From Basidiobolus meristosporus CBS 931.73 (taxonomy: Eukaryota; Fungi; Basidiobolomycota): a DNA stretch of 64,000 nt. Where the stretch lies: NCBI GenBank assembly GCA_002104905.1, contig MCFE01000025.1, positions 1 to 64,000 of the forward strand, given 5' to 3'. Under the pieces are notes generated by a model, which had not been told where the DNA came from, did not search any database, and saw only the letters and a program-made list of their open reading frames with translations. Made by a program: the position numbers and the translations under genes. Position 1 is the stretch's first letter, and each line of letters starts with the position of its first letter. This document shows, one piece after another, positions 1 to 28,439 of the stretch.

Positions 1-18
1 AAAACCTTTTTTCCAATA

Positions 19-2396
19 GAGGCGGGGAATGCACCTTCCAATCCGACCTCGTTTTTCGCGACCGCTCCTATAGAAGCAACATTCAATGAGTTGTCGAATC
101 CGTGGGGGCCACATAGTAATGGTCTGATCCTCGATAACTTGCTTGGTAAGTGTTGTTTAACGAGTACAATGAGTTAATAGCTCGAACAGTGAACCCGATT
201 GCCTTAATAGTCGGTGTAAGCCTGGCACCAATGTACTCGGACGTTTTCAACATGGTCAAAACCAAAGAAGGCTATGTCACTATAGATGCTCTTCATAGAG
301 TACTTGGTGCGTCCGGGTTGACCGCTGGCATGATTGAGAAGGTAAGGCGATATATATGACTGCGTACTCAGAAGAAGGGTGATGTTAAAATTACGAAACG
401 TAGATACTGGCGATCACCCTTCCATATGGCGAATCCAACATTGATCGCAAGGCGTTTGATGTGATCCTCGTGTTAGTTGCCCTTGCCCAAAAAAACATGG
501 GTATGTGTTCATCTAGTGCAAACAAGTTATCCACGACACTAATCGCTGTTTCACATGTAGAGGTGTCACTCGAGAGCATTGTCTCACACAAACAAGGCAA
601 ATAATCTTCTTTCAGTTCATTCAGCGGCGGACAAGTTCTTAATCGGTGGCACATTCAGATTTGCCTATACCTCTGCTACCGAGGCTTTCCAATCCGGCAG
701 GTGCCACAGACTCCAACGTTGAACCGACAGACAAAATCACTTCGATCAGCAGACCCTCCCCCGCTTCACATAGCTCAGAAGCTCTGCACTTATTAGACGA
801 TAAAGACTTGATCTCGGTACAAATCTCTCTACAGAAAGGCGGAGTGATCTTCAAGCATGTGAACTACATTCTAGAATCCAAAGTAGGACGTCCTTGATCC
901 ACCCCAATCGATTTATCACTATACTCAACCGCCTCTAGCAACACCTCTCATCAGTAACCCGAAGGTACAAAGACTTTTGGTGGCTTTTGGAAATATTGAC
1001 AAAACGATACCCATCCCGGATGTTGCCTACACTGCCACCCAAAAAGATCGGAGGTATGCAAAGGAGCCATTGACTCGACATGATATTTTAACCTTACACG
1101 CATTATTAGGGGACAAGACGTTCCTTGAGAGGAGACGCAAAGGGCTGTCCAGATTTATCAACTTCATTGCACGCCATCCAGTTCTAAAGAATGACAACAT
1201 AACTGTTGCATTTCTCACTGAACCGACCGTAAATACGCACATTGCTCATGATCTTCACCATGTGTCCGGGATACTAATTCTTCCATTACCTAAAGAGTAT
1301 GGAAGCTTACCGGAAGTTAAATACCGTCGATGTAGAAGAGGAGTTCTCAAAGATAGAGGTTACGGATCAAATCAAGGCCGCGGTGCCCCATGATTTAGAA
1401 GAAAAGTTAAGGAAGCTACGAGAGCGCTTAGATGCTTCGGTTGAATATTATACCAACCAATGTCTATTGATGGAGCGCATCGCCAAACGACAAGAAGGTT
1501 TGCATCTCATTCTCCGGCTTTACGCGAAATCACCGTCGTACTAAATCCATCCAGGCTCCTCCGAAGATATGGAACATTACAGCAGGATACTAGTGTAAGC
1601 TAGTTCGATTTCGCCCTCATCCTGATTGGCTATGCATAACTAAATGTTCGCTGATATACTAGGGCATTGGGGGAAAGCCCATGTCACGATTCTGGCTGTC
1701 TCGAATGTCCTCAGATCATCAGCGGGCTCAACACAGTAGCTGATTCATTCATTCGAGTGAGCGCTATAATGAAAGAAGCAGTATGTCCAGCTGGTTTCAC
1801 ACGATGGTTTGAATGAGTGAGTGATAACACTAGTACTAGGTCGATTCTTCGGTTAGTGGTGTAGTCGACCATCTAAGGCGTCAGAAGGAGATTGTGCTTG
1901 CGTTCAAGGTAACTACTATCCAGCTAAGATGGCTTCGTAAGCTAAACCGGTATTCTCGCCAGGAATTACTGGATCGCAAGGAGAAATTGATCTCAAGTGG
2001 GACAGAAACACTGGCCAGCCGAATCAAAGCCAACCAAGGCAAAATCGACCAACTTCGCGGTTCTAATGGCCCGACCAAAGAGATTCAGCGGCTAACTGAG
2101 GTGGTCTCGCAGGTAATTCCCTCACGATAGACAAACCATTTACTTCGCAAACTCTAAGGAGTCTTCAGGACCGGAAGGAGCTTCACGATGCCAAAGAACG
2201 GGATATCTTCATTCAATACTGTCTTTGGAGGGAATTGCAGTTTTATCACCAGAATACAACCTTCGTTACCAAATTGTATCAGCAATATGTCACGGATCAA
2301 ATCCGATTCACCACGGTACTAAATCAAGCATGGAAAGACTTATCTCCCACAGTGTGGAGTCTACCCGAATACAACACGAATACAATCTACCCATAA
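19..2396 (+). CDS. MVP1: Sorting nexin Mvp1/SNX8-like (PX + BAR), multi-exon, 5' end lies upstream of the window
   Basis: Spliced exons give [32 protein letters not shown], the PX core [25 protein letters not shown], and BAR helices (VEEEF...[17 protein letters not shown]; WRELQFYHQ...YVTDQIRF). Stop TAA at 2394-2396. Confidence 0.85.
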
Positions 2397-2772
2397 ACAT
2401 GAATCCCCCCTGATCACTCCGCGTCATTGGTCGACCGCTGCGAACAGCCACAAGTAGCCATTTCCAAATAAAAATCTGAACCAACTAGGCGCACTGTACC
2501 GAACGATAACTCCCACGTCAATAAGTAAATTGATTCTGTACCATAAGTCTACATGCGATTGGAAGGTGGTACTACCTTCTACTTTCTACCACTACTACTG
2601 CCATTACCATAACCTTATCGATCGATCCACAACCCTAAACGCTGCTTCCAGGCTTGATTGGTGGATGGGTGTTACAGCTCGTGATATATAAAAGTGAAGT
2701 TCCATTTGGATTGCATGATACTATTACCAAGCTGCCATTCCTCGTTTTGCTTTCGTACTGTTGAATTTATTT

Positions 2773-5291
2773 ATGCCACCAGCGAGCAATGGTCGATTAA
2801 TGCACGCGAAAATGTCCCAGCTATATAACGATAGAAACGAGCCCAATTATGAAACAGCGTTCATTGATGTACTGCTAGACCAAAACGCAGACAACGTATT
2901 GAATTGGAAGACGTCCAAACCCTTGACAGACTCATTCAATGAAAAGCCCAAAGGACGTACCTGCATACTTCGGCTTCAACTGAACCACAAGTTGTTTTTG
3001 ATTTGTTTGACATGGTTTCTTCTGATCACTGCAGTTGGTACCTGTGTATTCATCTACGGTCTACACCTAGATCATGAGCGTGTACGGAGCCAACTATATC
3101 AAAACTGCGAACAAAACAACTACGGCGTTAGATCTGTTCTGATGCAACTGGCGAATGACTTTGAAAGCTATTCCAACTTTGTCCATGCAGTGAATCAAGC
3201 AATGACCCAAGAGATTTTTCAAAGTTTTTCTGAGCTTGTGGCCCGGAACAATTACAATTATTCCTCGAGTTGGGTGGGTTGACTATCATACGTGTAACTT
3301 GATGCGAACTTCACTCTAAGCTTCACTCGTATCATCTAAATAGTATCCGCTGGTTTTTCACCACGAGCGAGAGGAATGGGAGCAAAATAGCAACTGCACC
3401 ATTTCAACATTCATGAAACGGGGAAATACATTTGAATTTGTACCGAGTGCACCCAGGACCATGTACCTTCCTCTTCATAGTGTATTAGGAGTACCAAGCA
3501 CATATAAAGGTAAACGCTCTTATTCAAGCCCTTGAAGTGCTACATACCCAACTTTACACATAGGTCTCGATTTACTGCAGACGAATGGGAGCGCGGCTAT
3601 ACATGAAATCTTGACTACTAGAAAACCAAGACTCGTCACTTTTGCTGACATGCTGTATAGTAGGAGCGGTGTAATCGGCATCTATTTTCCGATTGATGCA
3701 GGTCTCACCGCTACGACAGATCACTCAGAGAATACAACAGCAGCCAAGGGTCCATACTCCCTCCCGCTTGGCCTATTCTCCATTACAGTCGATGAATCAT
3801 CGATAGCTGAAAAAATGGAACCGTTCCTTACTCCGGTGGGAAAATCATGGATCAGAATAGTAAATCTCTATGACAACTCCACCGTGTACCGCACTGGCGG
3901 TGAGATTCATGATTCTGAGGATTTTCTCCAAAAAGCGATATCCACAGACATGGCTTTCTGCGGCCAGGAATGGATAATTGAGTGTTATTCTTATAAGCCT
4001 AGTTTTCTAACTTCAACTACCCAGCTGCTCTTGTTATTGTCCATCCTATTTTGCATTATTTTCTCCACCATATTACTTTTCGTATTCACAAGGAGGTACC
4101 TTAAGGCCAGGAAGGAAGTTTTCCTTGGAAACCAAAAGCTTCATCTTTCCAATGCCCTAGTGAAGAACTTGGCTACCAATAGCAAAGCCATCCTGATGTC
4201 CATCACCGACCCGCTCTTGCTGTTCAACCGCGATGGTAAGATAACCGGCGCCAACGCTTACGCCTTGTCCAGGACAGGCTATACCTCTGATGATATCAGT
4301 AGTTCCTCCGAGCTTGCCATCAAGGATGTCATCAACATCGCCCAGTGGACAGGCAGTGTAACCCGCTTGGTGATTGAGCCAGGGATGCGCGAAGTCACCA
4401 TCACCTGCAAGAATGGGTCGCAGTTCTTTGCCGAGGCGAACTTCAGTGCACAGACTGTGATCGGGTCAAACTATGCACAGGTGGTCACATTCCGCGATAT
4501 CTCGGCGAAGAAGCAGGCGGCAATCGATCTGTGGAATGCGAAGGACAAGGCGGAGAAAGCGGACAAGTCCAAGGGGGACATCTTGTTGTATCTGTGCCAC
4601 GAGATCCGGAACCCGGTCCATGCGATTGGCGGGTATGCTCGGTTGCTGATGGAACAGATGGAAGATGAGGACGAGCCTTCAGAGGAGATGGAGAACATCC
4701 TCTGCTCCTCAAAGTTCCTCAGCGAACTGGTCAATGAAGTGCTGGATTTGGCCAATCTGCACGACAATGACCTGGTGTTGAACGAGAGAACGATCAGCCT
4801 GGCAGAGTTGCTTGCCACAATCAACCACCTGACATCTCCAATGGAAGGGAGCAAGTATCAGCTCACCTCCACGCTCACAGGCTCTGGCCAGGTGAGGGTT
4901 GTGTGCGACCCTAGTGCCCTCCAGCTGGTGATCCATCGGCTGGGATGCCTCTTGTCAGACTCGACTAGCATCGATGACCACGAGGAGGCCTTGATGCGAG
5001 TGGATGTGGTGCTAGTCAAGGAGGATGCGGAGTGCGCCATCATCAAGTACCTCATCCAGTGCCCAAACAAGGTGATCCCCTCGCACTACCTAGCCGTTGA
5101 CTTTGACCCGCTGGCACAAGGGAACGGCTCGATGGGGGATCAGTTTGGGATGAAAGGAATCTCACTAACTTTGACTCGGATCATGATCCAGAAGCTGGGT
5201 GGCAAGTTGATCTCCACTTCCGACACCAGGATCGGCACTCAGTTTAGCTTTGAGTTGCAGTTCAAACGGTCCCCAGACCATCCCTCATCAT

Positions 5292-5326
<35 letters not shown>

Positions 5327-6066
5327 CCCTCTCCATCATACCAGCCAGAGAGCCCTTTGGATGAGAATACAAGCCCTCCAGAGAGCCAGCCACATTCCGA
5401 GGGGTCAGTCCCTATCATCAGGCCCAGCACACCAGAGATCACCCGCAAGAAGGGGAAATCGAAGCAGCCACGCACAAAACCAAACAAGAACAGGGGTCAG
5501 CCACTCGGGGTAGAATCCAACTCGAGGGGATCGCCGATGGAACCAACAGCCAGCCATCACGGAAAAGTCATGTAAGTTGCCATTCCATTCAACATTTGTC
5601 TTGCGAGATCTGTCCATTTGCTGGCGCTTGCATACTACACATCGCTTGGAAGACCGTCCACTAACCTGGCGTCCCATGATCTAGCCTTGCTGAGGACAAT
5701 CTGATCTGTCAAAAATTGGCAGCCCGACTGCTCACCAAGAATGGGTACGATGTGACCACCGCGAACAACGGGTTGGAAGCGGTCGAGGCTGTGGAGCGGT
5801 CCCCTGACTATGATATAGCCTTATTGGACATCCACATGCCCCTGATGGGAGGACTCGAGGCTGGGCGGGCGATGCGGGAGAGACTTGGGTTTTCAGGACA
5901 GATAGTGGCATTGACAGCGAACACAACCTCGGAATACCAGCAGGCCTGTGTGGATGCCGGATTTGATGCCTTCGCACCAAAACCGATTAAGGAACAGGAG
6001 TTACTCACCCTGTTGACGCAACGTAGCTACGAATCAAAGGAAGTTTCAAAACCCAAGAGTGGCTAG
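2773..6066 (+). CDS. Hybrid histidine-kinase-like receptor 1: TM-CHASE-TM-PAS-HisKA-degenerate HATPase-receiver (4 exons; introns ~3274-3343, 3510-3563, 5572-5684)
   Basis: TM1 KLFLICLTWFLLITAVG; CHASE-type motifs W|YPLVFHHEREEWE, MYLPLHSV, GLDLLQTN, FCGQEWIIECY; TM2 LLLLLSILFCIIFSTILLFVF; PAS/PAC ending FRDIS; H-box CHEIRNP; receiver VILAEDN...LLDIHMP...ALTA...PKPI. Confidence 0.9.
4170..5984 (+). repeat. Direct repeat copy A (~1.8 kb): PAS-HisKA-HATPase-linker-intron-receiver cassette
   Basis: Near-identical to 7906-9683 by line-by-line comparison; flanking sequence on both sides does not align at DNA level. Confidence 0.97.
5285..5338 (+). repeat. (TCGTCC)n(TCGCCC)n hexamer microsatellite encoding poly-Ser/Ser-Pro
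   Basis: tcatcatcctcgtcctcgtcctcgccctcgccctcgccctcgccctctcca; contracted by 22 nt in copy B. Confidence 0.9.
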
Positions 6067-6559
6067 CTATGGCTTTCATGTAACGCAAAAAACCGCAGAC
6101 AACACGATATTCTAGATATGCATGAATTCTTTAATCTTAATGTGTATATAATTTAGGATGTACAAAATTTCATTTGTGAAGTAGCACCAACTCTGACCAG
6201 TAGTTTAACCATTTCTGGATAGATGAAAACAGTCTAAATCCAAATCCCCTCCATATTTATTGTGCACCCACGAATGCAAGTGATCGATCGATGATTGGCA
6301 TGGGAAATATCACAGCCCTGTATCTAACCTCATTTAACCATTTTCAATACTCCACCAACTCTACTGCGATGGCAATCAGCAATTCCCCTACAATTCCCCT
6401 ACAATTCTATATCGATTACCATAATTCATGACTGACTAAACTTGGTAACTCATAAGGCCACATACAACCTCAGCAAACTCTATTGGCATTTATAAGTACC
6501 TGACAGAGTCTCTAGCACGTTTTCAGAATTTTGCGCCAACGACATCCACCGTTTCGTTC

Positions 6560-9500
6560 ATGCCAATCCCTGCTATATCGCGGAAAGGCTCGCATACAGG
6601 CACAACATTTTTTGACATACTAAACGATGACCCTGATGAAATCCTTGAAAATGAGAAGGATACAAGTTACCAAGAACCGCAAGATTGCGTACACAAACCC
6701 AGGAAAACCCGATTTCAACGATACAAACTCTTTTTAGTTTGTGCAGCCTGGTTTATAGTAACCTCAGTAGTTGGTGGCAACCTGTTTTACTATTCTTCCC
6801 GCATGGACAGGCAATCCATGCAAGAAAAACTGGCAAGTAATTGCCAACAGAGCACCAACATATTGAAGAGCACCCTGTCTCGACTGATCAACGACTTGAG
6901 TAACCACGCCTACTTTGTGAGCTCGGTAGGGCAGGGGATGACTTACGAGATGTTCTCAACATTCACCAGCTATGCAACTAAAGATAGTTTGAAGTATGCA
7001 TTGGCTTGGGTAAGGCTGCCTCCTCAAACATTGAAGCTAGCCATTCATATCACTCATAGTTTATTGTTTAGCAACCACAAGTGAAACAACACGAAAGAGA
7101 AGAATGGGAAGCACAAAACGGCATTAATATCACTATTGTTCAAGAGACATCGTCAATGTTGTTGAAAACCCCAAGTCCAATGCAACCTTACTACTATCCA
7201 ATCTTGTATGGAGTAATGTATGATACTGAACATATTGGTATGCACTAATTATACACGAATAACCTGGATCAGATCTCCTGAAACGTGGCTAACTTGAATT
7301 TTCAGGGATTGATGTGCTTCAAACAAATCGATCGGACACAATCCTGAAGGCATTGGGGACCTTAAAAACTGCAGTCTCTCCAATCAGTGAGTTTAAGCTC
7401 ATGGGGTTCGACGGGATTCGAATATACCTGCCTGTGCTGGTAAACCTCTACCTTACTGACAAAGGCGACTATAGTACTTTCAGAAATAACCACACCAAAG
7501 TCCACGAAAATGTACTTGGATTGGTTAGTCTGAGTGTGAGTATCCAGAATATACTCACGAATGCGATCAATATCTCCGATGGAAACTACATTCGGATCAT
7601 TGATAAAACCGGCAATGACTATATGATCTACAGCAATAACGGAAAGGAAGAACTTCCCGGCGATATCTTCGAATACAGAGAGGAGCTTTCGTTTGGCGAT
7701 CGTGAATGGCATATTTCTTGTTATTCCCCCCCGCTTCCTTTTTTCCCAAGCAAAACCAAATCTTCCCTCTTCTTCGCGATCATTCTTTGTACCATATTTT
7801 CTACCATCATTCTCTTCATCTTAACCAAAAAGTACCTCAAGGCCAAAGAGTTGGTATCCATTAGAAGCAAAATGCTTCAAGATTCCAATGCTTTGGTTAC
7901 CGATATGGCTACCAATAGCAAGGCCATCCTGATGTCCATCACCGATCCGCTCTTGCTGTTCAACCGCGATGGTAAGATAACCGGCGCCAACGCTTACGCC
8001 TTGTCCCGGACAGGCTATACCTCTGATGATATCAGTAGTTCCTCCGAGCTTGCCATCAAGGATGTCATCAACATCGCCCAGTGGACAGGCAGTGTAACCC
8101 GCTTGGTGATTGAGCCAGGGATGCGCGAAGTCACCATCACCTGCAAGAATGGGTCGCAGTTCTTTGCCGAGGCAAACTTCAGTGCACAGACTGTGATCGG
8201 GTCAAACTATGCACAGGTGGTCACATTCCGCGATATCTCGGCGAAGAAGCAGGCGGCAATCGACCTGTGGAATGCGAAGAACAAGGCGGAGAAAGCGGAC
8301 AAGTCCAAGGGGGACATCTTGTTGTATCTGTGCCACGAGATCCGGAACCCGGTCCATGCGATTGGCGGGTATGCTCGGTTGCTGATGGAACAGATGGAGG
8401 ATGAGGACGAGCCTTCAGAGGAGATGGAGAACATCCTCTGCTCCTCAAAGTTCCTCAGCGAACTGGTCAATGAAGTGCTGGATTTGGCCAATCTGCACGA
8501 CAACGACCTGGTGCTGAACGAGAGAACGATCAGCCTGGCAGAGTTGCTTGCCACAATCAACCACCTGACATCTCCAATGGAAGGGAGCAAGTATCAGCTC
8601 ACCTCCACGCTCACAGGCTCTGGCCAGGTGAGGGTTGTGTGCGACCCTAGTGCCCTCCAGCTGGTGATCCATCGGCTGGGATGCCTCTTGTCAGACTCGA
8701 CTAGCATCGATGACCACGAGGAGGCCTTGATGCGAGTGGATGTGGTGCTAGTCAAGGAGGATGCGGAGTGCGCCATCATCAAGTACCTCATCCAGTGCCC
8801 AAACAAGGTGATCCCCTCGCACTACCTAGCCGTTGACTTTGACCCGCTGGCACAAGGGAACGGCTCGATGGGGGATCAGTTTGGGATGAAAGGAATCTCA
8901 CTAACTCTGACTCGGATCATGATCCAGAAGCTGGGCGGCAAGTTGATCTCCACTTCCGACACCAGGATCGGCACTCAGTTTAGCTTTGAGTTGCAGTTCA
9001 AACGGTCCCCAGACCATCCCTCATCATCCTCGTCCTCTCGCCCTCTCCATCATACCAGCCAGAGAGCCCTTTGGATGAGAATACAAGCCCTCCAGAGAGC
9101 CAGCCACATTCTGAGGGGTCAGCCCCCATCATCAGGCCCAGCACACCAGAGATCACCCGCAAGAAGGGGAAATCGAAGCAGCCACGCACAAAACCAAACA
9201 AGAACAGGGGTCAGCCACTCGGGGTAGAATCCAACTCGAGGGGATCGCCGATGGAACCAACAGCCAGCCATCACGGAAAAGTCATGTAAGTTGCCATTCC
9301 ATTCAACATTTGTCCATTTGCTGGCGCTTGCACACTACACATCGCTTGGAAGACCATCCACTAACCTGGCGTCCCATGATCTAGCCTTGCTGAGGACAAT
9401 CTGATCTGTCAAAAATTGGCAGCCCGACTGCTCACCAAGAATGGGTACGATGTGACCACCGCGAACAACGGGTTGGAAGCGGTCGAGGCTGTGGAGCGGT

Positions 9501-9750
9501 CCCCTGACTATGATATAGCCTTATTGGACATCCACATGCCCCTGATGGGAGGACTCGAGGCTGGGCGGGCGATGCGGGAGAGACTTGGTTTTCAGGACAG
9601 ATAGTGGCATTGACAGCGAACACAACCTCGGAATACCAGCAGGCCTGTGTGGATGCCGGATTTGATGCCTTTGCACCAAAACCAATCAAAGAACGCGATT
9701 TACTCAATATTCTAGGCAGCAAGAAGCAAGCTCGCTCAGAGATAGAATAG
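6560..9750 (+). pseudogene. Hybrid histidine-kinase-like receptor 2 (same architecture), frameshifted before and within the receiver domain; truncated allele, young pseudogene or assembly error
   Basis: Same intron positions as copy 1 (~7010-7071, 7238-7305, ~9286-9384). CHASE motifs W|QPQVKQHEREEWE, YYYPILY, GIDVLQTNRS, FGDREWHISCY. A 22-nt deletion at ~9037 shifts the frame to TAG 9225-9227; a 1-nt deletion at ~9587 gives TAG 9602-9604. The ancestral frame ends at TAG 9748-9750. Confidence 0.8.
7906..9683 (+). repeat. Direct repeat copy B of the signalling cassette
   Basis: Matches 4170-5984 apart from about 17 substitutions and three deletions (22, 14 and 1 nt). Confidence 0.97.
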
Positions 9751-10768
9751 ATCGCCTTGTAGAAACGTATTTGTTCCATAATTATTAATTCCACTAATTA
9801 GCAATTTCTCGGAGTTTCACATGTATATATTGATACCACACATATGTAATGACTCGTTTGTTGACAAAAGAAGTAAAGCACGCAGCCAATCAATGTACTC
9901 TCCGATTTTTGCGATTTCGAGTATCCAATTGCCGCGCACCAGAAATCTCCACCAAGCAGAATTTAAGGTTAGAGTAAGGAATCTGACCCCAGTTCTAGAT
10001 AGTTCGAGCCGAATAGCGATCATCAGAGTCTTTGGCATCCATGACCGACGCGATAACCTCCCTCCCCATCGACGGAACAATTTCGGGAGACATGAAATCC
10101 CAAGAAGCTGTGACGTCAAGGGAACTAAGATTATTGTCACGCTGCACGGTCAGGCATGCAGGGGCAGCAGTACTCTATGGTAGACGGATAAAATGGGAAT
10201 TTCACAACAAAGCATAGAATGGAGCGAGAACTGCCTTTTTCGGAGGAAAAATCACAGCGCAACCTATGTCTGTTCACATCATCGTTTAGGGACAAACATA
10301 TCTTAAATGGAGTAGCTGTTGTTGAATGTATCAGCCCCGACTTGCAAGCTCGTTACTTGCGAAGATTTTGAGTCAAAATGGCAACTGGGATCCAATGCGA
10401 CCTGACAAATTCTCGATCATTGAAGTCAGCATACGTACCGTGCTGTCGCGATTTCTCTGGTGACATGGCGAAGGATTGGATCCGAATCAGACCAATCTTC
10501 GTTGATTAGCATTGTATATCATTGTGAAAATTGGGTTACCAAGGCTCTGCTTCGACTTACAGGCCGACACTTCCTTTTCTATATTTAGTTTATCCTAACG
10601 ATATCGGGAAACTTTGTGAAGAGATCCCATTTAGTCCGGCTATTTTGGTATCGGTTCAGTCCTACCCACTGCCCTGCCCATTGCAGTAGCCAACCGTCTC
10701 TGGAATATAAATAGTTGGCATCGTGGAAATACGCCACGGAATATTTGAACGGTGCTCTCAAGCGCAGA

Positions 10769-11321
10769 ATGGATCTAAAACTCCTCCTGAACCCGGACAT
10801 CACCACGACCCCCACCACCACACCAATTTTCACGAGAGAGCTAAGCTATCAGAAAGGCGCACACTATTGTTTATGGAAGGGATGTGGAAAGTCGTTTACT
10901 AGGAAGCCCGATCTCCTGAGGCACCAGCGGATACATACCGGAGAGCGTCCCTACAAATGCTCCTGGAAGGGATGTATGAGAGAGTTTATCCAACGCTCAA
11001 CACTAATCATCCACTACCGATCGCACACTGGCGAGAGGCCATATCACTGCGATTTCGTAGGATGCCACCAATCCTTTGTGGATGTAAGTACCGTCTAAGC
11101 TCTAGGAAGAACCGAGTTGGTTATTAACCCGCATACGCAAGTCTTCCTCTCTAGTCAGGCATAAACGAGGCCATACTGGCTATCGACCGTATGGATGTCG
11201 GCATTGTGAGAAAACCTTCACCAGGAAAACCTCGCTGACAAGACACTTACAAACATGCCACCAGGAGCTGGGCCATATATTCGGGACATACCACAAATCT
11301 TTTGGCTCAGTCAAAAAGTAA
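10769..11321 (+). CDS. Small C2H2 zinc-finger protein with four fingers (intron ~11084-11141)
   Basis: [36 protein letters not shown]...[14 protein letters not shown]...|[40 protein letters not shown]; TGERP linkers; stop TAA at 11319-11321. Confidence 0.9.
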
Positions 11322-11666
11322 CCTACCTGTGGACCGATTCATAGAACATATCATCATAGTAGCATTTTTGAACCTCAAAATCATCGGAAAATGGATTTCC
11401 CTTCATTGAACAAGGAGAAGATGGATAGATTTGTGTGTATAAAAATCCTTAAATTTCTAGATCATCATCTTGCCTGGTTTGTTTGGATAAATGCAGAAAT
11501 TTCGGAATATTCAACAACCAACTTGGTCTTATTTTAAACTTGATCTGTTTGATGCTGGCTGAGGCTAAGACGTTTCTTTTTCATTTGATGGAAAAAAATT
11601 CTTCAAGTAGTGTCTAGTTATTTAAATTATCAGCTCTGATTCTCTACTCCAGTACTGGGTGGGCAA

Positions 11667-12894
11667 ATGACTTCGACTTACTTTAAGCCTGGTGTGTATG
11701 ACATCAAAGTTGGGTCTACGTTCGAAGACAAGAATGACGACTCCTTCTATACGTTCAGATGTAGGAAAACTCGAGGTCCGTTTTGTTGTGCGTACGACAT
11801 ACTTATTTCTCTCCATCCCTAGACAATTTCAAGCCCGATTCGATCGATTACGCCAAAGATGCAACCTTACAAAAGGAGGCTGACGGCCAGTTTTCTGTCG
11901 AATTCCAGAGTCACCAGGTATACACAGCTTGGAATTCCGCTTTCTGTTCAAGCTAACCTATCCGATTTTAAGGAAGGGGAAACCCATTCTTTCAAGGGCA
12001 CCCAGACTCCCTCCAAAGATATAGAATGTCTTCTTATTTACGATGAGGAGACAGGGGTATGCATTCTTCTTCAATGGTTTTGCTACCTCGATGCTAACTC
12101 ATTATCCAGACTTTTACACTTGAACGTCAAGCCTCCGCATTTACTTTGAAGAATGTTCGACGTTCAAAGGCGACAGATATGGAATTAGATCCCACACCTT
12201 CCCTAGTCTTACCTGCTTCGTCAAGCGTCCCCAAATCACCAGGTGTCGGGGTTACTCCAGGCTCTGAGAAGGATGGTGATGAAATGGACCTGGATCTTGA
12301 CACGATGTTAGAGGAGGAGATTGACAAAGCCCTCGATGCTGAGCTCGGGGAATTGGATGGAGACGACGAGAAATCAGGGGACGAATTCGAAGAAGTTGAA
12401 GTTCCAGAGATCAAAGCGCCTCCACCAGAGCCTTATCCACGCACACCCAGTCCAGCCCGCTCTCCCTCACGATCACCTTCCCGGACAGATAAAGGCAGGA
12501 AAGATACTAAGCGTGGATCATTCAGTTCCTCTTCATTCTCTTCCTCCGGGTCTGGTTCGAGTTCCTCCGGCTCAGAGTCCGATTCCGGATCCAGCTCATC
12601 CGGGTCCAGCTCCAGCTCGGGGTCTAGCTCGGGATCAGACTCGGATAGCTTTTCAGATTTGGAAAAGGATATCGAATCGGGAGTCAACTCCGATTCGAAA
12701 AAGAAAAAGCCATCCACTGAGGAGCCCAAGGTATTTTTCACGTAGAATTCTAATGTTCTTGCTCATTCACTAATCATCAACATAAATCACAGGCACATAG
12801 CGGTCCTATCTCCTTGAGTGCTCTCTTAGGGGACGATGATGACGACGGCAATGAGAGAGACGAAGCCGGGATCACTTCAAGTGATGAGGATTAA
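11667..12894 (+). CDS. EAF: ELL-associated factor (EAF family transcription elongation factor), multi-exon
   Basis: N-terminal EAF-type motifs FYTFR|YNFKPDSID and HSFKGTQTPSKDIECLLIYDEETG|TFTLE, followed by an acidic/Ser-rich tail ending GPISLSALLGDDDD...SSDED*. Confidence 0.75.
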
Positions 12895-13004
12895 CAACAA
12901 CGCAACCTTACTTTTACACTGTATGTACATTATATTAATAAACCTTGATTTCATAATATGTATCATATAGGTGTTGTTTATTTACATGGGGCTATACAAT
13001 TACT

Positions 13005-14100
13005 TCACACGGATATTGCTCTAGACACAAGGTTCTCGTTCTCGATGTAAGGAGGTGGTTGTACAAATGGCGAGTTGGGAGTCTCTGAGAACGTGTATGG
13101 CGGCAACGACTGGACTACGTCCCTGGTGTTCGATGACAACACGAGCACTGGCACCTCTAGAGAGACTACTCTGGTTCCCAAGTGCGCATCCTTCAATTTG
13201 ACTTTGAAAGCCAATATATGGTCGACAGTGAACCATTTGGTATTGCAACTGAAGTGAACGTTGCGTGGAGAAATGCGGACATTTAAAGAGAGAGATTGAG
13301 ACTGTAATTCCCGTGGGGAGATGCTGCTCAGCTTGATCCAACTCTCCTCAACAAGATTAGTGTCAGCCTTGGGTATATGGTTGGTGATATTCTCTCTGAT
13401 ATAGCAACCAACTTTCAGGATTTGGGTGGTAGACCGGATCCGGTCAAGCTTGAAGTCGACAGGAATATTCTCGTCGAATCCCACCATCCTGCTAGGCAGG
13501 CTGATTTCGTATGTTAGGATATTGCTCCATTCGGAGCAGAGATGGACAGCCTGGGCAAGCTCGGAATTGAACAAATCAGGGTAGCGACGAACAATGATTT
13601 CCTTTCTCGTCACCGTGTTTCCTCGCAAAAAGCCTCGATATAAGGTTGCTTCCAGCTTGTATTCGATCCCACCGTTATCCAAGTGGATGGTCACAGGCAA
13701 AGAGCCGTTGAAGACATACTCGAAGTCAAAGGTATGTACACCCGCCGGCAAAGTGTGGTTTTTTGGTCCAGGCTTCACAAGTTCCCATCTTCTATCAACC
13801 AAAGCGTTATTTGAAAAATGCAAAATTGACTGGTTACCACGAACTTGAAAGGACAAACGATAATTAGCCCAAACGAACTTCTGGTCAATAGTGTGCGTCT
13901 ACTCTCTTACCTTCATTCCAATTTTGATAAACAACCCCCAGCAATTGGAGGTCTAACGAGACGAAAGATATCGCCTCCTTAAGATTCAGTATCACGCTAC
14001 CCCTCAGTAGAGCACCCGCGGACTCGGGCGGTGAGCCGTTGAAAGCAAGAACCTGTTGCTCCAACAATATCTCTAGTGATAGCTTCTTCTTGATAATCAT
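13005..14100 (-). CDS. Alpha-arrestin (arrestin-N/-C domains with PY motifs), 2 exons
   Basis: Exon 1 LRGSVILNLKEAISFVSLDLQLLG; exon 2 LPAGVHTFDFEYVFNGSLPVTI...GGIEYKLEA...WSNILTYEISLP; C-terminal LPPY and PPPY motifs. Confidence 0.9.
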
Positions 14101-14611
14101 GGAATAATATGGCAGCACGGTGAAATCTATTAGCGCTGCCAATACGGTTATATATATTTGGCAATGTTTCCTAGCCCCAAGTAATGCAATATCTTCAATA
14201 GAATTTCATTGGGAGCGAAAATCCCTCATTCCCAGAGATCCTGATTCGCCCAAATCCAGAGTAGCAGGTGATGAGCGATTTTTGCTCAGGAGTATTTGGT
14301 AACCAATTACACGTTAACCTGCTTCGTGACCATGGTCAAGGTGAAATTCCACACACTAACAAATATTTACGACTTCTCGGTTAACTTATTCGTGATATTA
14401 ACCAACAACGTCAGTACCACCAATCAAGGAATTCTGCACCACATGGGCCACGAGAAACAGAACCGAACCCCTTGAACCCAAATGCAATTATCAGTGCCAA
14501 TGTTCTCTAAATGACCTATAAGGTTTATCTGCTCCCTGATTGCGATAAGGGAGGGCTGTTTGCTCTTCACGTGCGATGATCATCTCGGCGCCTTACAAAA
14601 CCTTTTACTAA

Positions 14612-14739
14612 TTCTAGAAGCATTTTTCAACAACAGCACCTAACTATTTCTAGAAGCATTTTTCAACAACAGCACCTAATTATTTCTAGAAGCATTTTTC
14701 AACAACAGCACCTAACTATTTCTAGAAGCATTTTTTCAA
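14612..14739. repeat. 36-bp minisatellite, about 3.5 copies
   Basis: Unit TTCTAGAAGCATTTTTCAACAACAGCACCTAACTAT starts at 14612, 14648, 14684 and 14720; head-to-tail, no spacers. Confidence 0.95.
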
Positions 14740-15836
14740 TGGCAACATTCCACCAGCTCTAGGATTAATATCAAAATCGAAATACTCCCCAGCCACAGGA
14801 AGTTTTTTCTATTTCAGTCCTAAGGTTTATTCCATGCTAACTTTATTTGATCCCACCCCCTAGTTTTCCCCAAAAATCATATTAAGGAGATTTGGAGGGA
14901 AAACCTTTGACCGGCAGTTGAATAGACAATGGGGAGTTTTAAGACTGTTGAGGAGTGCATGCCTCGGTCTAACGCATACAATGGTGGCCCACTAATTTGT
15001 GTTGATAGGCATTCGCAACCAGCATCGGGCCAACCATTGAGCTAACCATTGAACCACTGCACGGCTATATGTATGTAGCACAATATTGCGATCACCGAAT
15101 ATCCATACGGACATATCCTCCTTTAGCTTATTAAAATATCACAGATCTTGCGCTTTAGATGTATCGTAATCACCGAGACCTTAATCAGGCCATTCCGCAC
15201 GTGTTAGTCAATGCCGAAGGAATGCGATGGTTTTGCAGAGGAAATACGACAGTTTAGGGGAGGGGAAGCACATCTGTATGGTTTTCGTCGAGTGTCGTGT
15301 GGCTAAATATAGTATATGCTCGTGCTCAGGATAGTGGTGACTATATAGTTGAGATACAGCTCCCACGCAGATGCAATGCCTACTATCGTGTATCGGCCCC
15401 TATCCCCAAGAAATTTGCCAGAGTGACCCAAGGTGTTGATTCGAAGGCATAAAGTGACAACAACCTTCAGTGTTTTGGCTGCATTGCAACAAGAATAGAT
15501 GGGTTCAACGAAATTCCGACTAGCAATTAGCCTGGGTTCCAGATCTCTTGCGTCCAAAAGGCCCTGAAACGTAGGTTGATACTGGGCCATTGCTTCAATA
15601 AATATGTATATGTCACGAACAGCATCCCAGACGTTTCAATTGAATATATTTAAGGTTAGTGAATAATGATCCATCAGTAGGATCCGTTGATATCTTCCGA
15701 TATGTTTTCTTTAAATAGCAGCGGTAGCGCGCGATGGAGAGTCAGATCTCCCACTTTTTGCATCTCATCCTCACGTTTCTTCCACCTTTTTATATACTGC
15801 ATTCACTCCATTTCAGTACCACACAAATACCAAACC

Positions 15837-16390
15837 ATGGCCTACTCGATTGCTCGCGCCCAACATAACCCTAACTACAAGGCTCTTCCACACACATTGA
15901 TCAGTAAGTCCATAGACATCCCCGTTCCACCTCCAACATCGTACTAATCGAGCCATCAGATTTCACCGCCGAATCGATGTGTAGCCTTTTGAACTGTAAA
16001 AATCGCCCATTAGTGCACATTTCCTTACCAGAGCTCTTGCTGTTCATTGAGCGTCTCACCGAAAGGTCGGGAATTAACACCATCACAGGGGTGGTTGCAC
16101 TTATATACGTCTACCGACTAAAGGCGAGACTTCCCGCAAGGGCCCAGGGGGAGTACGGGACCTCCCACCGGATCTTTCTGTCGAGCTTGCTGGTCGCTTC
16201 GAAGTATTTATACGGGGAGGAGAGTTTAAACAATCGCGCCATGGCCGAGATTTCTGGGGTGTTCACCACCGCGCAGGTGAACCTCATGGAGAAAGAATTC
16301 CTCGGCCTGTTGGATTATCAGGTCTGGGTCAACGACGAGGAGATTCGGGATTTCCTTGAAGAGCATAAAGCAGAGCTTTGCTTCTTTTAA
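15837..16390 (+). CDS. Pho85-type (Pcl) cyclin, 2 exons
   Basis: LPELLLFIERLTERS...VVALIYVYRLKARLP...GTSHRIFLSSLLVASKYL...NNRAMAEISGVFTTAQVNLMEKEFLGLLDY is a Pcl1/2-like cyclin box. Confidence 0.9.
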
Positions 16391-17398
16391 ACCACACCGC
16401 GATTCGACGGAATCCACGATATCCTCCACGCCCTTTCCATCCGTTGATTGTGATGTAGATATTCATGTATATAGTTAATCTAATCCTAGTATTATAAACG
16501 ACAGTCCATTTTGCTATGTTGCGTATCAGAACCCATCCTGATAGATACCAAGCACTCACCCAGCTGCATAGTAATAGTCTTGGGTATCCAACCTAACGCC
16601 AGATACACCGATTGTCAGATAAGCACATGTCATCGATTGTCAAGGTTTTAACCGCGATCCTCTCCACAGTCCACGGAAATAAATGCTATTCGATGACAGG
16701 TGATCTGCTTCTCGATTTGCCAGATTGGGTGGGTGTGACATATCTGGTAGGACATTGTACTTCTTCCTCTAGTTGGTGGAGCATCGTCCCTCTTCCTCTG
16801 TCCACGTTAGGTCTAGGTGCTGATGTGATGCACGGGATGGTCATCTGCAGTCACACCAACCAGACCTGGTTGGTCGCAGATGGATATTATCAGCAGGCCT
16901 ACTCGTACGATATATGACGTTGGGAGCGACACCACCCGGTTGTTGATAACCCGAATCATCATTACAATCCTGATTGTAGAGTGGTCGATAATTATCCGAA
17001 TCATCATTACCACCCTGATTGTAGGATTCTGATCTCTATTGTTCTTATTATTATTATATACGCTTACCTTCTATCTGTCGATAATGTAGCGTCATGGGAT
17101 GCATTATCCGATATGTCGAACAGATTGCCTTGAGTTAGGTATTGTGAATTAATACAAACATGGTCACCAATTGCGTTCATTGAGTGTTGGATGGTCAGTT
17201 ACACTATTGTTCCGACTGGCAGTGCTGGCTAGTCCAGGTTTGTCCACATCTGCGATTAGTTTAATAGTTGGTTTATTTTTACAGATTTTTTGATTTGATT
17301 ATTGGCATGGAGGGAATTCAGGTCCAAGATTCAGATTCATGACTTGTGAGAATTAGCATATACATAGGGGTGACCGGTACAAGCCTATCCAATAGACC

Positions 17399-20300
17399 TC
17401 ACAATGGTATCTCTTGCTTGGTGCTTATCACATTTAGCGCGGTAGGTATCAGTAGCTCCCAGGCCCCGCCGCAAACACAAACCTTGCGGAACATGGACTG
17501 CCAAGGAGTGAGCATCCCATGTGGATCGTTTTCATCGATTTCCGCGGCCGAGTAACGAAGGCATCTGGTTGGTAAAAAAATAGCTGATGCATAAGCAAAC
17601 GTGTCACCTGTGGAGGGGATAAGGTAGGTCAAACCTTTTGCATTGTGAAATGTGATTTGCTTTCAGTAGCCGAGTCTTGCGAATAACGTCGATACACCCT
17701 TTAGCATGTTCGAATTGCTTCTTGGAATCCAATTTAGACCTTAATCCTTGGTCAACCTTGCGCAACTCCAACCATTCCAAGTCGTAAAAGAAAATGTTTG
17801 TAGCCTCGAAAAGCGCAGCGAAGTGCTGCGTGAATTTCTCTTGAATTTGTTTAACCGAGTCGTGAAGCTGTGAAGAGACAACTGACTCTGCAACAGTAAT
17901 GCTATCGATTTCATGCCGATCGGCGCCTAAGCATGTAAAATATCAGTAACCTATCGAGTGGACTCGTGCTTACATCCAGATAACATTACCCAAGGATTTC
18001 TTCTGCTCTTCGATAACGGACGAAATTTGGCCAAAGTAGTCATGCAGGTCGTTGATTTTAACTGGTCGCGTTGCCATTATTTCGTTGAGGGCTTTTAAGC
18101 ATTCTCTGCTTTCTTCAGAGTTGCTCTGCTCAAGATGAAGCTTCAGTCCACTGATCAGGAAAAGAATGTTTCGAATATTGAACACTAGATGTGGTCGATA
18201 ATAAAGCGCCAAATGGGAGGGACTTGAATATATATCCGAAGCAGTGTCTATAAATATGATATTAAAATGCATGTCGTGCGTAACCCGACTTGGTTCAACT
18301 CGAGATGTACCTGATGCTGTTTTGGGTGGGCCAGTTATTTTGAAAAAGGAATCCGTATTTCGTAAAATGAATACGCAGCTATCCAGAACCCATGCAACAA
18401 GAGGAAGGAGAGACTTTATAGTATCCGGATCAAATTCTTGTGGCTTGAATGTTAAATCCTTCACATTCTCCTCAAGATAAGTTTTGATCTCGTCAAGATC
18501 TTCGCGGCAACTAGCCATAAAGGCTTCGTGAATGAATTGATACTGCAAAGCTAGGTAGACGTTGATGAATTGTATTGGCTTCCCATTGGCATATTTGAAC
18601 ATGAGAAGCTGTGTAGCAGAGACTCGTCTGATCAAAGCTAAATCGAGGGTAATCTCATGTCTCTCGGCAGCAGTATACAAGACAACGTGAAGCCTTTTGA
18701 GGATCTTTTCCGGGAATTCTGTGATCGTTCAATCTGTATTAGGAAAGGTCACTGTCAATCTCTCAAATCTAGTGTTTTACTCTTGTCTTTGTTCTGCTTC
18801 GTTAATCGAAGAACCGCTTCAATTAAATCAGTCGGATCGACGTTGTTCAATATGCATAGAGCCAGTTGGCAACTCAGCTGATTTGTAGCGATTGTTATAT
18901 CTATATAGACATCGCCATTTAGGGCATTTCAAGTTGATGTTGAGAAGGGCTGATAACCTTACCTGAATCAAAAGCAATATCAAGTGGTAATTTACGGAAT
19001 TGTCCAGTTGAATCTAACACAAGGAGGAAAATATCGTTTGGAGAAGCGCAACAATCTAAAGGGAAGGCTTTGGCGCAATCTGGGTGAATGCTTGATACTA
19101 GTACGATACCATTGTATGCACTTACTGGGTCGCTCATCCTCATTGCCACATATACTTGTATAACCAACTGAACTCAAAGTTATGCTAATTCAAGTAAAGA
19201 ATGAGTTAGTTGAGATTCGGGCAACAGGCGGGCTAATGCCCAGGCGGCCAATCTTACTGACCTATCCCTGAGTTCAAGTTTTCCATTTGAAAGGCCGAGA
19301 CAGATCTGCTGCTTTGATTTCAGCAGAACAACACATGTAACGATGGCCTCCTCAATCTCGGCGTTGCAGACATAATCTAGTATCTACACCAGTAGCCCTG
19401 TTTTCAGTATTGTGCTCTACTTCTAAATATAATATTTGACCATATACCCGCTTTGTAATGCTGGGCGGTTTGTCTGAATCTGAAGAGCCGATATTCCGAA
19501 AGGCAGAGTGCAACTGCACCTCAGATTCTTTCAATTCCCAACAGTAAAGTTTACTGATGTACTTCGCGTCCGGAGCATCTAGAGATCATGGGTCAGACCA
19601 CAATTAACCTGCTTCAGCAGTAAATTTCTGTACCTTGGTTTGTCCCAGTGATGATTAGGATCCGTGTGTTTCTTTCACTAGTGGGGGGTAATAATTTGAG
19701 ATGTAGTAGCGAGCAGTGCGGATTCTCCAAGAAATGGGAGTCTATGGCCTGATCTGATAGATGGATCTTGGCAACCGATTCGCATTGAATAGCTAAAGCT
19801 TGTGTAATGGTGAATAAAATGAAACATCCATTCTCGGTTCAAAAATATGTAACTACCAGGATCAACCGCTAAAAACTGGACAACCACTTCAAAGAGAGAT
19901 AGCATCTTGGTTTGGGAATTTGCTTGGTATACCGCCAACAAGAGTTTTCCATCTAAGCCAGAGAGATCATTTAGAACAGGAAAAAGGAAACAGATGAGCT
20001 GGGCAACGCACTATCCGTAAGAACAACATCACAATGAGAGATACGGTTGCCATCGCCATTCTTTCCACCGAAATAGGGAAGAGATGCCTCCAATTGGGAG
20101 AATAACGTCCCTTCGTGTTGAAAGTGAACGACAATCTAGAGTAGATAGTATGTATCAGAATTACGTTACAATAAAATCATTCCGAAAGAATACGAACCCT
20201 TCCAGAGGCCAAAATAACCAGAAATGCCAAATGACCGAATGGATTGCGAGGCCCTTTAAACGGGGATCTAGAGAAATGGCATGTGCCATCTTCAGTTGTA

Positions 20301-21769: not shown

Positions 21770-24700
21770 ATGGATCCTGATAAAATCAATGTTGCCATCA
21801 GGGCAAGACCCTTAAATCAACGGGAAATTAGTAGTGGACAACGTTCCGAATGGACAATCGAAGGAAATAGTATATGCTTAGCTTCACAAGATAATCGGGC
21901 GCCTACGTCAACATACTACTTTGGTATACTCTAAAGTATTTTGAGACCCTGTTTTGCTGTTCTCTAAGCTAGCTTCTATTATTTAGACAAAATTTTCTCC
22001 GAAGAAGCAGATACAACCGAAATATACGATGTCGTGGCAAAGAATATTATACATTCCACCATGAACGGAGTTAATGGTAGTTTACTGGTTATGATCTGGT
22101 TTTGTTTATTATTCAACTCACACGGTTATTTTCTAAAGGAACCATTTTCGCTTATGGTCAAACTTCTTCTGGTAAAACGGTAAGATAAACAGAGTATTCT
22201 AAGTGTACGCCTTACAAGATTCACTAACTTTGGCAATTTTGTCATCATAGTTTACTATGCACGGTACCAAAGAGGAGCCTGGTATTATCCCTATGGCGAT
22301 CGAAGATATATTTCGCTACATATTGGAGACCCCTGATAGAGAGTTTCTTCTGCGCGTCTCTTATTTGGAAATATACAACGAGGTCATCAAGGATCTGTTG
22401 AATCCAGAAAACGAAAACTTGAATATCCGTCAAGACCCTACACGTGGTGTCTTTGTAGGAAAACTCACCGAAGCTATCGTGCTTAGTCCTGAGGAAGTCA
22501 TACAACTCATGAAGAAAGGAGAAAGCAATCGACACGTTGGTGAAACAAATATGAACGAGAGAAGTAGTCGTTCTCATACGATCTTTCGTATGGTTATCGA
22601 AAGTAGAGAAAGATCCAAGGAGTCGAAACGTGATTCACAAAGTAATGTGGGTGGAGCAGTTAAAGTATCATCCTTGAATCTCGTCGATTTGGCTGGTTCA
22701 GAAAGAGTTGGTCAAACTGGTGCTGAAGGTATCCGTTTGAAAGAAGGAGGACACATTAACAAAAGTTTGCTTGCTCTGGGGACAGTCATTGCTAAGCTAG
22801 CCGAACAAGAGAACGACCGTGGACATATTCCTTATCGTGACTCGAAACTGACTAGAATCTTACAGCCATCACTTGGTGGGAATGCCCGTACAGCTATTAT
22901 CTGTGCCATCACTACTGCAAGTAATTTTTATGAAGAAACGACCAGTACGCTCAAATTTGCCAGCAGAGCCAAGACTATCAGCAACAAACCCGAGGTTAAT
23001 GAAGTTCTTACTGATGAAGTTCTTCTAAAGAGATATAGAAAACAAATCAACTCCTTGAAGAAGCAACTTGACGAAGTTAAAAATCAGAAAGATGACGAAG
23101 ATACTAAGGGGCCCAACCCTGACGAAAAGCTGCAAACCATGCTCAAGGAGAAGGAAGAGGAAAAGACCAGGCTGCTTTCCCACTATGAGAAGCTTAAAAG
23201 AATGATCCTCACTTCTACACACATGAATTCTTCCGCAGCGATTAAAACTGCGCAAAAGGTTAGAAGACGCACTTGGTTCCCAGGGTTCAATAATGATAGA
23301 AATGAAATCAACCAAGAAGGAGCTGACACAGAGCAAAGTAATAACTTTGAGGTCAACCGAAAAGCGGAGCGGGTCAGCATCGTTTCTCAGAAAACCAGTA
23401 CGGAGATTCTTGATCGGGTGACTCATGAGATGACCAAGATCAAGAAAGAAAAAGACGACTTTTCTGCCCGTGTAAATACTTTAGTAGATGATCGTCAAAA
23501 GATTATTTCATCTATAAAGGAGCTTGTTGAATCGGAGCTATCAAATCAACAGCTGGAGACTTTGCCTCAAGAGCTTAAATCACTTGGCAGTTATCTGCAT
23601 GAACTCAAGTCGTCCCTAGAGTACAACAAATGTGTTATTCAGAAGAATGCCGAGGTATACTCTGAAACTGAGCGATTCTTACAAATGGAATCCAAATCCA
23701 TTCAGAATGCATATCAAGAAAAAATCGACGAGTATGAGAAGTCTATCAAATCGTTGCAGGTTACCATCGAGAAAACTCGGAATCAAATGGAGGAATACCG
23801 GAGAGCGCAGAAAGAGGCTATCGAAGAGCGTGACGCCGAAATTCAGGTCGCCAAAAAATCGCTTGCCGATATTGAAAGCAAGTATAACGCCGTTGTAGAG
23901 AACAAAGAGAAGGAATTACTGGCCTCTCAGACTGAGATTCAAACTCTCACTGAAGCAAAAACTTTGCTTGAAGAGCAAGTCGAAGAGATTAATGCTGAAG
24001 CTGATGAGCTTGTTCTGCAGTTCAACACTCAACTTGAAGAAAAACAAGCGGAAATAGAAAATGCCGTTCGAAAGTTAAATGAACTTCAAGAGGAGTACGA
24101 CATAGAATTACAAAATCATCAAGCAGAAATCCAAGATTACCAAGCTCAATTAGAGACCATCGCAGAGGAACATGTGCAGATTGTTCAAAATAGTCAAGAT
24201 GAGCTGAACAATGTCAAGGCGGAGCTTGAGAAGCTACAAGAGGCTAAGGCTCACCTAGAAACTATGAAACAAGAAGAACTCGCACTTTTGAAGGAGCAGA
24301 TGTCACATGAAGCAAAGAAAGCGGAGGAGGAAATTCAACTCATTTCGGAGGCTCGTGATAACGCTAACAGTGACCTAGAAGAATTGAGAACCCAGCTTAC
24401 AGCAATGGAAAGTACCCATGAAGAGAAATCGAGGGAGCTTGAGGATAATATTCGCCGTCTTTCTGAAGAGCAGGAATTGGCTGTTGCTCAGAATGATTCT
24501 CTTAAGAAAGAAATATCTGACATTCAGAGCCAGTATGACTCTCTTGTTGCTGAGCATTCCTCTACGAAAGAAACGATCTATCAGCTAGAGCAGCAGGCTT
24601 CCGAAATGACCTCAACAAATGAGAATCTTCAGAAATCTTACCAAGAAGTAGATGATCAACGCCAATCTCTAGAAGATCGAAATACTGAACTTTTGTCAAA

Positions 24701-27700: not shown

Positions 27701-28439
27701 GTCCGTGGGCCAGCAAAAACTTGCTGGGTTGCAACAATCATTGCATCAGCGTGAAAGTGAGGTCGAGTTTTCTAGCAAGAAACTTCTGAAGCTTGAAACC
27801 CAAATCTCCAAGGAATCTTCTGAAGTCGAGCCCAGTCATGATACTCCGGATGATCAATTGGATGTCGTGCGTAGCTTAAACAATGAGTTGGATCAATTGC
27901 GGTCCGAGAACGAAGTTCTTCGAAAGGAGTATCGTACTATTGTTCTAGTGAAAAACAACGAGATATCCAAAAGCCGTCAAACTGCGGATGCTCTTCTTCA
28001 AGCGCAACTGGAAAATGACAAGTTGAAGAGAAAAATCGATTCGTTGATGTCAAACACCAAAGAAGAAATCAAATCACCAGAAAACAATCCTCCAGCGAAG
28101 CGACACACTCGTAGCAGTAGAGCTTCCAATTCAACTTCTGAAATCTCGTCAGCTATTGTATCACCTAAGCGTAAAGTGGTTGATGTTGCGGTGGAGATTG
28201 AGACCAAGGTAGTAAGTCCTACAAGGCGCTCAACAAGAACATCATTGAAGAAAGCTCGTTTGGAAAGTACAGATACTGTCTCGTCAGAAATCAAATCAAT
28301 GGTGTCGAACGACGCCAGTGTAGCTGAAGAGAGTAAGCCAACCAAGCCTTCCAGACGACTTAGGCCACTCCGATCTCGCCGTGGAGCAAACAAAGACGAC
28401 GATGAAGAAGCAGCTACGCCCGAGTGTAACCAACAGTAG
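21770..28439 (+). CDS. CENPE: Kinesin-7 (CENP-E-like) with ~1700-aa coiled-coil stalk; three short 5' exons plus one 6.2-kb exon
   Basis: INVAIRARPL, P-loop split over introns (AYGQTSSGKT), switch I MNERSSRSH, switch II [30 protein letters not shown], kinesin-7 signature KVRRRTW, C-terminus PECNQQ. Confidence 0.9.

Follow-up and report, generated by a model that had tools for sequence, protein, structure and literature searches.

How two neighbouring receptor genes can be almost identical over one half of their length and only distantly related over the other is the question raised by the opening part of contig MCFE01000025.1 of Basidiobolus meristosporus CBS 931.73 (assembly GCA_002104905.1). 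The window, by which is meant the whole stretch of 64,000 nucleotides (nt) that was analysed, carries near its beginning (its positions 1-19604, locus L001, are identical to the contig start) two tandem genes, A and B, encoding CHASE hybrid histidine kinases whose cytoplasmic cores agree at ~99% of sites and whose sensor halves do not align as DNA. Genes A and B are very probably ancient tandem paralogues in which the core was overwritten by interlocus gene conversion, separately in each of the two Basidiobolus species compared here, with limits set by loss of homology.

Two collinear genes and a near-identical tract

As an initial annotation of this sequence had proposed, the two genes share one architecture and one set of intron positions: they are collinear, and their three introns lie at identical positions and in identical phases. 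All introns of gene A are of the GT-AG type when read from the sequence. The features of the two genes are the following.

2773-6066, plus strand: gene A, CHASE hybrid histidine kinase, intact (1018 amino acids, open from start to stop)
2773-3273, 3344-3509, 3564-5571 and 5685-6066, plus strand: predicted exons of gene A, splice sites read from the sequence
2773-4169, plus strand: sensor half of gene A (N-terminus, first transmembrane segment (TM1), CHASE, TM2, juxtamembrane part), old, with an orthology signal
4170-5984, plus strand: putatively converted tract in gene A (PAS, HisKA, degenerate HATPase, Ser/Pro linker, intron 3, REC)
5572-5684, plus strand: intron 3 of gene A, lying within the tract, with a 14-nt indel (5597-5610) and two substitutions
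5985-6066, plus strand: gene A's own C-terminal tail and stop codon, homologous to the tails of B and of B. ranarum, diverged
6067-6559, no strand: A-B intergenic spacer, GC 0.385, spanned by one Illumina contig (5943-7935)
6560-9750, plus strand: gene B, with two frame breaks as assembled
6560-7009, 7072-7237, 7306-9285 and 9385-9750, plus strand: predicted exons of gene B
6560-7905, plus strand: sensor half of gene B, which groups with BrB and BrB2 of B. ranarum
7906-9683, plus strand: putatively converted tract in gene B, a single collapsed 1.8-kb contig in the Illumina data

The near-identical block, compared by BLASTN and MAFFT, runs from 4170 to 5984 in gene A and from 7906 to 9683 in gene B, a tract of at least 1815 bp that includes intron 3. 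The two copies differ by three indels and by 17 substitutions (~0.9%), of which 15 are transitions, and this bears out the ~99% identity first reported. The coding differences comprise 13 synonymous and two non-synonymous changes, intron 3 shows two substitutions per ~100 aligned nt, and the synonymous divergence (dS) between the two copies of the tract is 0.03-0.06. Both edges are sharp. At the 5′ edge the identity between A and B jumps from 63% to 98%, and at the 3′ edge the identity falls off abruptly into tails that are still recognisably homologous yet diverged. No DNA similarity between A and B was detectable upstream of 4057/7795, where the sensor halves share 31% protein identity, so the description of CHASE halves that cannot be aligned as DNA and are distant as proteins also stands. 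Because silent and intronic sites are homogenised together with the rest of the tract, protein-level constraint is excluded as the cause of the identity. A mutational process resembling repeat-induced point mutation was considered in view of the 15 transitions among 17 substitutions and was rejected, since the changes run in mixed directions and those in coding sequence are synonymous in 13 of 15 cases.

Read evidence for the two copies consists of contigs from two Illumina-type runs (X1 and X2) of strain CBS 931.73, and these confirm all four junctions of the tract with its flanks. One contig passes from the A sensor into the core and reaches 4199 or 4216; another leaves the core via the A tail, crosses the spacer and the B sensor and runs back into the core (5943-7935 or 7952); a third leads from the core into the B tail, from 9642. 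The core itself appears as one collapsed 1.8-kb contig (window 7906-9671), a mosaic of A-type and B-type letters. With two entries into the core, two exits from it, and the A tail joined to the B sensor, the path crosses the core twice. The two runs agree at 12 of 13 variant clusters and differ in their letters at 9112-9127, indicating that both variants are present in the reads. Both core copies physically exist, although the demonstration is not airtight; runs X3 and X4 contained no sequence of the locus, and a search for RNA runs returned none.

Sensor and core histories in two Basidiobolus species

The order of genes in the window, taken from public gene calls and from the models above, is a PX gene followed by A and then B, and the first of these serves as a synteny anchor.

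1-2396, plus strand: PX/Snx8-BAR gene upstream of gene A, from a public gene call

The same order is found in B. ranarum (assembly GCA_040143965.1), where contig L002 carries the PX gene and an A-type sensor (P0004) and ends inside the core, and contig L003 begins inside the core and carries a 3′ half with an A-type tail (P0003) and a B-type sensor (P0005) before ending in the core as well. The start of L003 overlaps the end of L002 by 48 nt with one mismatch. Since orthologues of both sensors occur in the same order in B. ranarum, the A/B duplication predates the split of the two species. Between species, the gene A sensor is 39% identical to P0004 and the gene B sensor 51.5% identical to P0005. 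That B. ranarum has an orthologue of each sensor was also the reason for rejecting a recent whole-gene duplication followed by fast divergence of the sensors.

Separate trees of the two halves are discordant, as the initial annotation had predicted for gene conversion. The sensor tree, which included ten CHASE outgroups, unites gene A of B. meristosporus (BmA) with its B. ranarum counterpart (BrA) with support of 98/94 and places BmB with BrB and BrB2, and the approximately unbiased (AU) test rejects a constraint joining BmA to BmB (p = 2e-7). The core tree groups by species, with 100/100 for (BmA,BmB) and 100/100 for (BrA,BrB), and here the AU test rejects a constraint joining BmA to BrA (p = 1.7e-45). 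Quartet site patterns follow the same division: upstream of the edge 48 sites favour orthology, 26 the species grouping and seven the third arrangement, and in the core one site favours orthology, 72 the species grouping and none the third. The B. meristosporus edge and the point at which the identity between A and B climbs from 60% to 93% in B. ranarum fall on one alignment column; the dS between the A and B cores of B. ranarum is 0.31, and dS between the species is saturated. Given that cores group by species and sensors by orthology, each species must have homogenised its cores separately, within limits that nearly coincide at the 5′ and at the 3′ side.

Further members of the family in B. 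ranarum extend this picture. The REC part of contig L005 shares 97% identity with its L003 counterpart as far as roughly the same 3′ limit, beyond which the two diverge. Positions 1-2885 of L005 (JASJQH010009772.1) hold a second tandem junction, consisting of an A-type tail, a spacer and a B-type sensor (P0074), which outside the core is ~68-78% identical to the first B. ranarum junction. The second junction indicates that B. ranarum has at least two A/B pairs, in addition to the A-like copy BrC (P0002 on L004). The core of BrC is only ~70% identical to all others, and not every family member has therefore been homogenised. P0002 is publicly named 'Enoyl-[acyl-carrier-protein] reductase ... 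mitochondrial'; it is a mis-annotated fragment of a CHASE kinase with TM, PAS and HisKA parts.

The tract also differs from its flanks in base composition. In exon 3 of both genes the GC content at third codon positions (GC3) rises from 0.48-0.51 to 0.70-0.76, with a step at the tract edge (Fisher p = 2e-8 and 3e-6), and codon positions 1 and 2 are almost flat; GC3 in the gene A sensor half is 0.48. The step is smaller in B. ranarum (0.34 to 0.46), where the cores are less alike. This pattern fits repeated GC-biased gene conversion, as a correlation in which the changes are unpolarised.

Searches for core and sensor beyond the locus, as suggested by the initial annotation, were made with the exon-3 protein, the core and the sensor profile; they returned only the B. 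ranarum relatives and no further annotated family copy in B. meristosporus, a result that unannotated copies, such as gene A itself, would escape. BLASTN found no third copy of the shared block within the 64-kb window. Elsewhere in the window, positions 22257-28439 of the plus strand form an uninterrupted open reading frame of 2060 amino acids with low GC3 (0.43).

Receptor domains, public gene models and the frame of gene B

Both proteins have two hydrophobic or TM segments flanking a loop of ~270 amino acids, the segments of gene A lying at residues 73-99 and 369-401. The Pfam CHASE model (PF03924, cut-off 25 bits) matches the public model of gene B (P0001) at 28.2 bits and the B. ranarum A orthologue P0004 at 27.8 bits, and scores the B orthologue P0005 slightly below the cut-off, at 24.4 bits. 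The spliced gene A sensor matches a custom CHASE profile, built from Pfam-verified CHASE domains from outside Basidiobolus, at 24-28 bits over about three quarters of the profile (E values of 1e-9 to 7e-11 for one target). Pfam recognises CHASE on spliced models only and found no CHASE domain on single exons, where it is missed because two introns split the domain. HisKA (PF00512) scores ~44 bits in both genes (44.2 on P0001) with the H-box HEIRNP. The REC domain (PF00072) is complete in gene A at 74.9 bits; in gene B a 1-nt loss throws the same sequence into two frames, as pieces of 47 and 22 bits, and P0001 reaches 36.4 bits.

The remaining catalytic domain is degenerate in both genes.

4880-5290 (A) and 8616-9010 (B), plus strand: degenerate HATPase domain, identified by motif loss and a Pfam score below cut-off

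HATPase_c (PF02518) stays below its cut-off of 26.4 bits both in B. meristosporus (18.9-19.8 bits) and in B. ranarum (24.7 bits). Alignment with five CHASE kinases and HK853 shows that the DxGxG motif of the G1 box is replaced, the first Asn of the N-box is lost and the G2 box is partial. This motif loss is common to B. ranarum, and its presence in both species indicates that the pseudo-kinase-like state is old and conserved. Weak sequence matches include the RetS structures PDB 6dk7 and 6dk8 (E ~3e-4). Among the features that define a CHASE hybrid histidine kinase, both genes thus have CHASE between a TM pair, HisKA with its His and REC with its Asp, and they lack a canonical HATPase_c; to judge from these motifs the shared cytoplasmic module may lack kinase activity.

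Public annotation represents the locus incompletely. Gene A is annotated by its last exon only (5686-6066, a 126-amino-acid 'Response_reg' product), and positions 2773-5684, which encode its CHASE-TM-PAS-HisKA part, have no gene model in the public record. Gene B is K493DRAFT_296463 (P0001; 6560-9604, 907 amino acids, CHASE/HisKA/REC), which corresponds to Bm|296463| of Herivaux et al. 2017, the 'unique' Basidiobolus cytokinin-receptor homologue (PMC5285503). The second, unannotated gene A at the locus makes this literature count of one Basidiobolus CHASE kinase too low.

According to the initial annotation each gene resumed its own in-frame C-terminal tail after the shared block. The tails do differ, and that of gene A is in frame; gene B as assembled is broken by coding losses of 22 nt and 1 nt. 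Compared with A, gene B is short of 22 nt in the coding sequence of the Ser/Pro linker, of 1 nt in REC and, inside intron 3, of a further 14 nt; the two coding losses interrupt the frame.

9036-9037, plus strand: break 1 in gene B, 22 nt missing, hexamer-repeat Ser/Pro linker
9586-9587, plus strand: break 2 in gene B, within the REC coding sequence, which lacks 1 nt (GGG to GG)

After break 1 the kinase frame of gene B as assembled meets a stop at 9225-9227, and in P0001 ~60 linker residues are out of frame, the beginning of REC is left out and the protein stops within that domain. In the Illumina core contig the extra G and the 14-nt insert are both present, and the linker is in frame and 6 nt shorter than that of A. 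At the linker (window 5280-5345 / 9016-9059) these contigs show a third form, with one TCGTCC and four TCGCCC units, that matches neither assembled copy, so that at least one assembled linker is wrong or the linker is variable. Had gene B been neutral since homogenisation, 14-25 non-synonymous differences would be predicted in the tract, and two were observed (P <= 8e-5). Because the tract changes are 13 synonymous to two non-synonymous and the Illumina contigs differ from the assembly, the breaks are either very recent or consensus errors, and they may be errors of assembly. The frameshifted tail of P0001 was dropped as independent support for the breaks, as the window comes from the same public record.

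Explanations for the tract and parallels in known systems

The proposal that gene conversion had overwritten the core of ancient paralogues is strongly supported by the B. ranarum orthologues, the discordant trees, the silent sites and the junction contigs. Under this proposal A and B would be ancient tandem paralogues encoding membrane receptors, in each of which two TM helices enclose an extracytoplasmic CHASE domain and the cytoplasmic part consists of PAS, HisKA, degenerate HATPase, linker and REC. Their duplication would have preceded the split of B. meristosporus and B. ranarum, and after it ectopic conversion between direct copies 3.7 kb apart, the presumed repair mechanism, would have replaced the whole cytoplasmic module in each species separately, very recently in B. 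meristosporus to judge from its low dS (~0.04). The tract would end where older divergence leaves insufficient homology, in the juxtamembrane region at the 5′ side and in the last ~25 codons at the 3′ side. A drop in homology at both ends would make repeated events share their limits and leave the sensors outside, and homology rather than selection probably sets these limits. Recurrent conversion would also have raised silent-site GC inside the tract.

Several observations weigh against this account or parts of it. The depth of the core contig is ~1.2x that of its flanks, with ~1.7x expected for two copies, although depth is not equivalent to copy number. Recurrence in B. meristosporus is suggested by GC3 as its sole evidence, the 17 differences being evenly spread as after a single event, and an unrelated gene in the window (59568-61841) also has a high GC3 of 0.68. 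In B. ranarum the 'A' core is joined across two contigs and is possibly a collapsed consensus, and the B core is represented by its first 300 nt only. The low depth, together with the collapse of the core in the short-read contigs, would be expected if the duplicated core were an artefact of assembly, a collapsed or chimeric repeat with a single real core. This is highly improbable given the two entries and two exits in the short-read graph with a path that crosses the core twice, the differing letters of X1 and X2 at 9112-9127 that place both variants in the reads, and the independent assembly of another species with the same tandem layout and pattern. A more serious contender, possible yet still doubtful, is that gene B is a decaying pseudogene with real frameshifts that has been passively overwritten by A, leaving one working receptor. 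The 22-nt and 1-nt coding losses in the assembly speak for decay, as does a public model that has to pass out-of-frame sequence to get to REC and stops within it, but assembly and model belong to the same record as the window and are not independent evidence. Decay is further at odds with the shortage of non-synonymous differences relative to the neutral expectation, with a B sensor that is better conserved between species than that of A (51.5% vs 39%), and with the Illumina contigs, in which the extra G, the 14-nt insert and a linker that stays in frame are all found.

Selection offers another explanation for the shape of the tract, in which diverse CHASE sensors would feed an identical output, or heterodimerise via HisKA, and conversions reaching into the sensors would be purged. 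The tract coincides exactly with the cytoplasmic module, both of its limits recur in two independently homogenised species, core segments are common to at least three B. ranarum genes, and the ratio of 13 synonymous to two non-synonymous differences indicates that both copies are under constraint. The same limits are expected without selection, however, as identity just outside the tract is ~60-63%, and the unconverted core of BrC, ~70% identical to the others, argues that identity of the core is not obligatory. In B. meristosporus only two genes participate, one of them frame-broken as assembled, and the output module they share has a degenerate ATP-binding domain. On balance a selected cassette is unlikely. 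Slightly less likely again is its more elaborate form, a boundary-locked cassette kept identical across paralogues in at least two species, whose products could heterodimerise and feed a single phosphorelay; with an ATP-binding domain that looks dead, the receptors would in that case act as RetS-like phosphatases or phospho-sinks, not as kinases. If the limits were selected, the locus would show how a cell diversifies its inputs while the output stays constant.

Ordinary gene conversion, here in a clean form, remains the preferred reading, and the locus adds one more case to a process already known; concerted evolution driven by conversion, with parallel cases among fungi, is well described (PMC6993855, PMC1805685, PMC4467073). 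No paper was found on gene conversion among histidine kinase paralogues or Basidiobolus CHASE genes. The locus is of use as a textbook-clean natural case of domain-restricted concerted evolution, and it shows that kinase-core trees of these receptors are misleading on their history. It also corrects the record, as B. meristosporus has two CHASE receptor genes and not the 'unique' one cited for gene erosion, and the published model of gene B contains out-of-frame sequence.

The receptors resemble the fungal CHASE hybrid kinases of 'group XIX' (PMC5285503; Kabbara et al. 2018, PMC6324907), which likewise have CHASE between TM helices, HisKA and REC; they depart from that literature in the second intact gene, A, and in a HATPase that scores below cut-off and lacks the G1 box. 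Ligand binding by fungal CHASE kinases is assumed in the literature by homology only (PMC5285503). The absence of canonical ATP-binding motifs beside a HisKA-type dimerisation domain is shared with RetS-type hybrid sensors of Pseudomonas, a likeness that suggests a possible role as phosphatase, phospho-sink or heterodimer partner; the match itself is weak (E ~3e-4), and the sensor domain and the organism differ.

As a pattern of sequence evolution, the tract is like interlocus conversion in general in its kilobase length, its homogenised intron and its GC enrichment. In human segmental duplications (PMC4467073, PMC3790853) and in ribosomal protein genes, conversion likewise leaves paralogues closer within species and silent sites homogenised, and the concerted evolution of fungal ribosomal protein genes (PMC6993855) shows a parallel pattern in related species, as found here. 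Unlike in those cases, homogenisation in Basidiobolus is restricted to one half of a modular receptor, with repeatable limits and a ligand-binding half that is anciently divergent. A parallel in this respect is the NWD/HNWD family of Podospora (Paoletti et al. 2007, PMC1805685), a fungal signalling family in which one module is likewise under concerted evolution and the remainder of the gene is not. In Podospora, however, it is the WD-repeat recognition module that is exchanged and diversified, whereas Basidiobolus homogenises the output module and leaves the recognition module out of the exchange.

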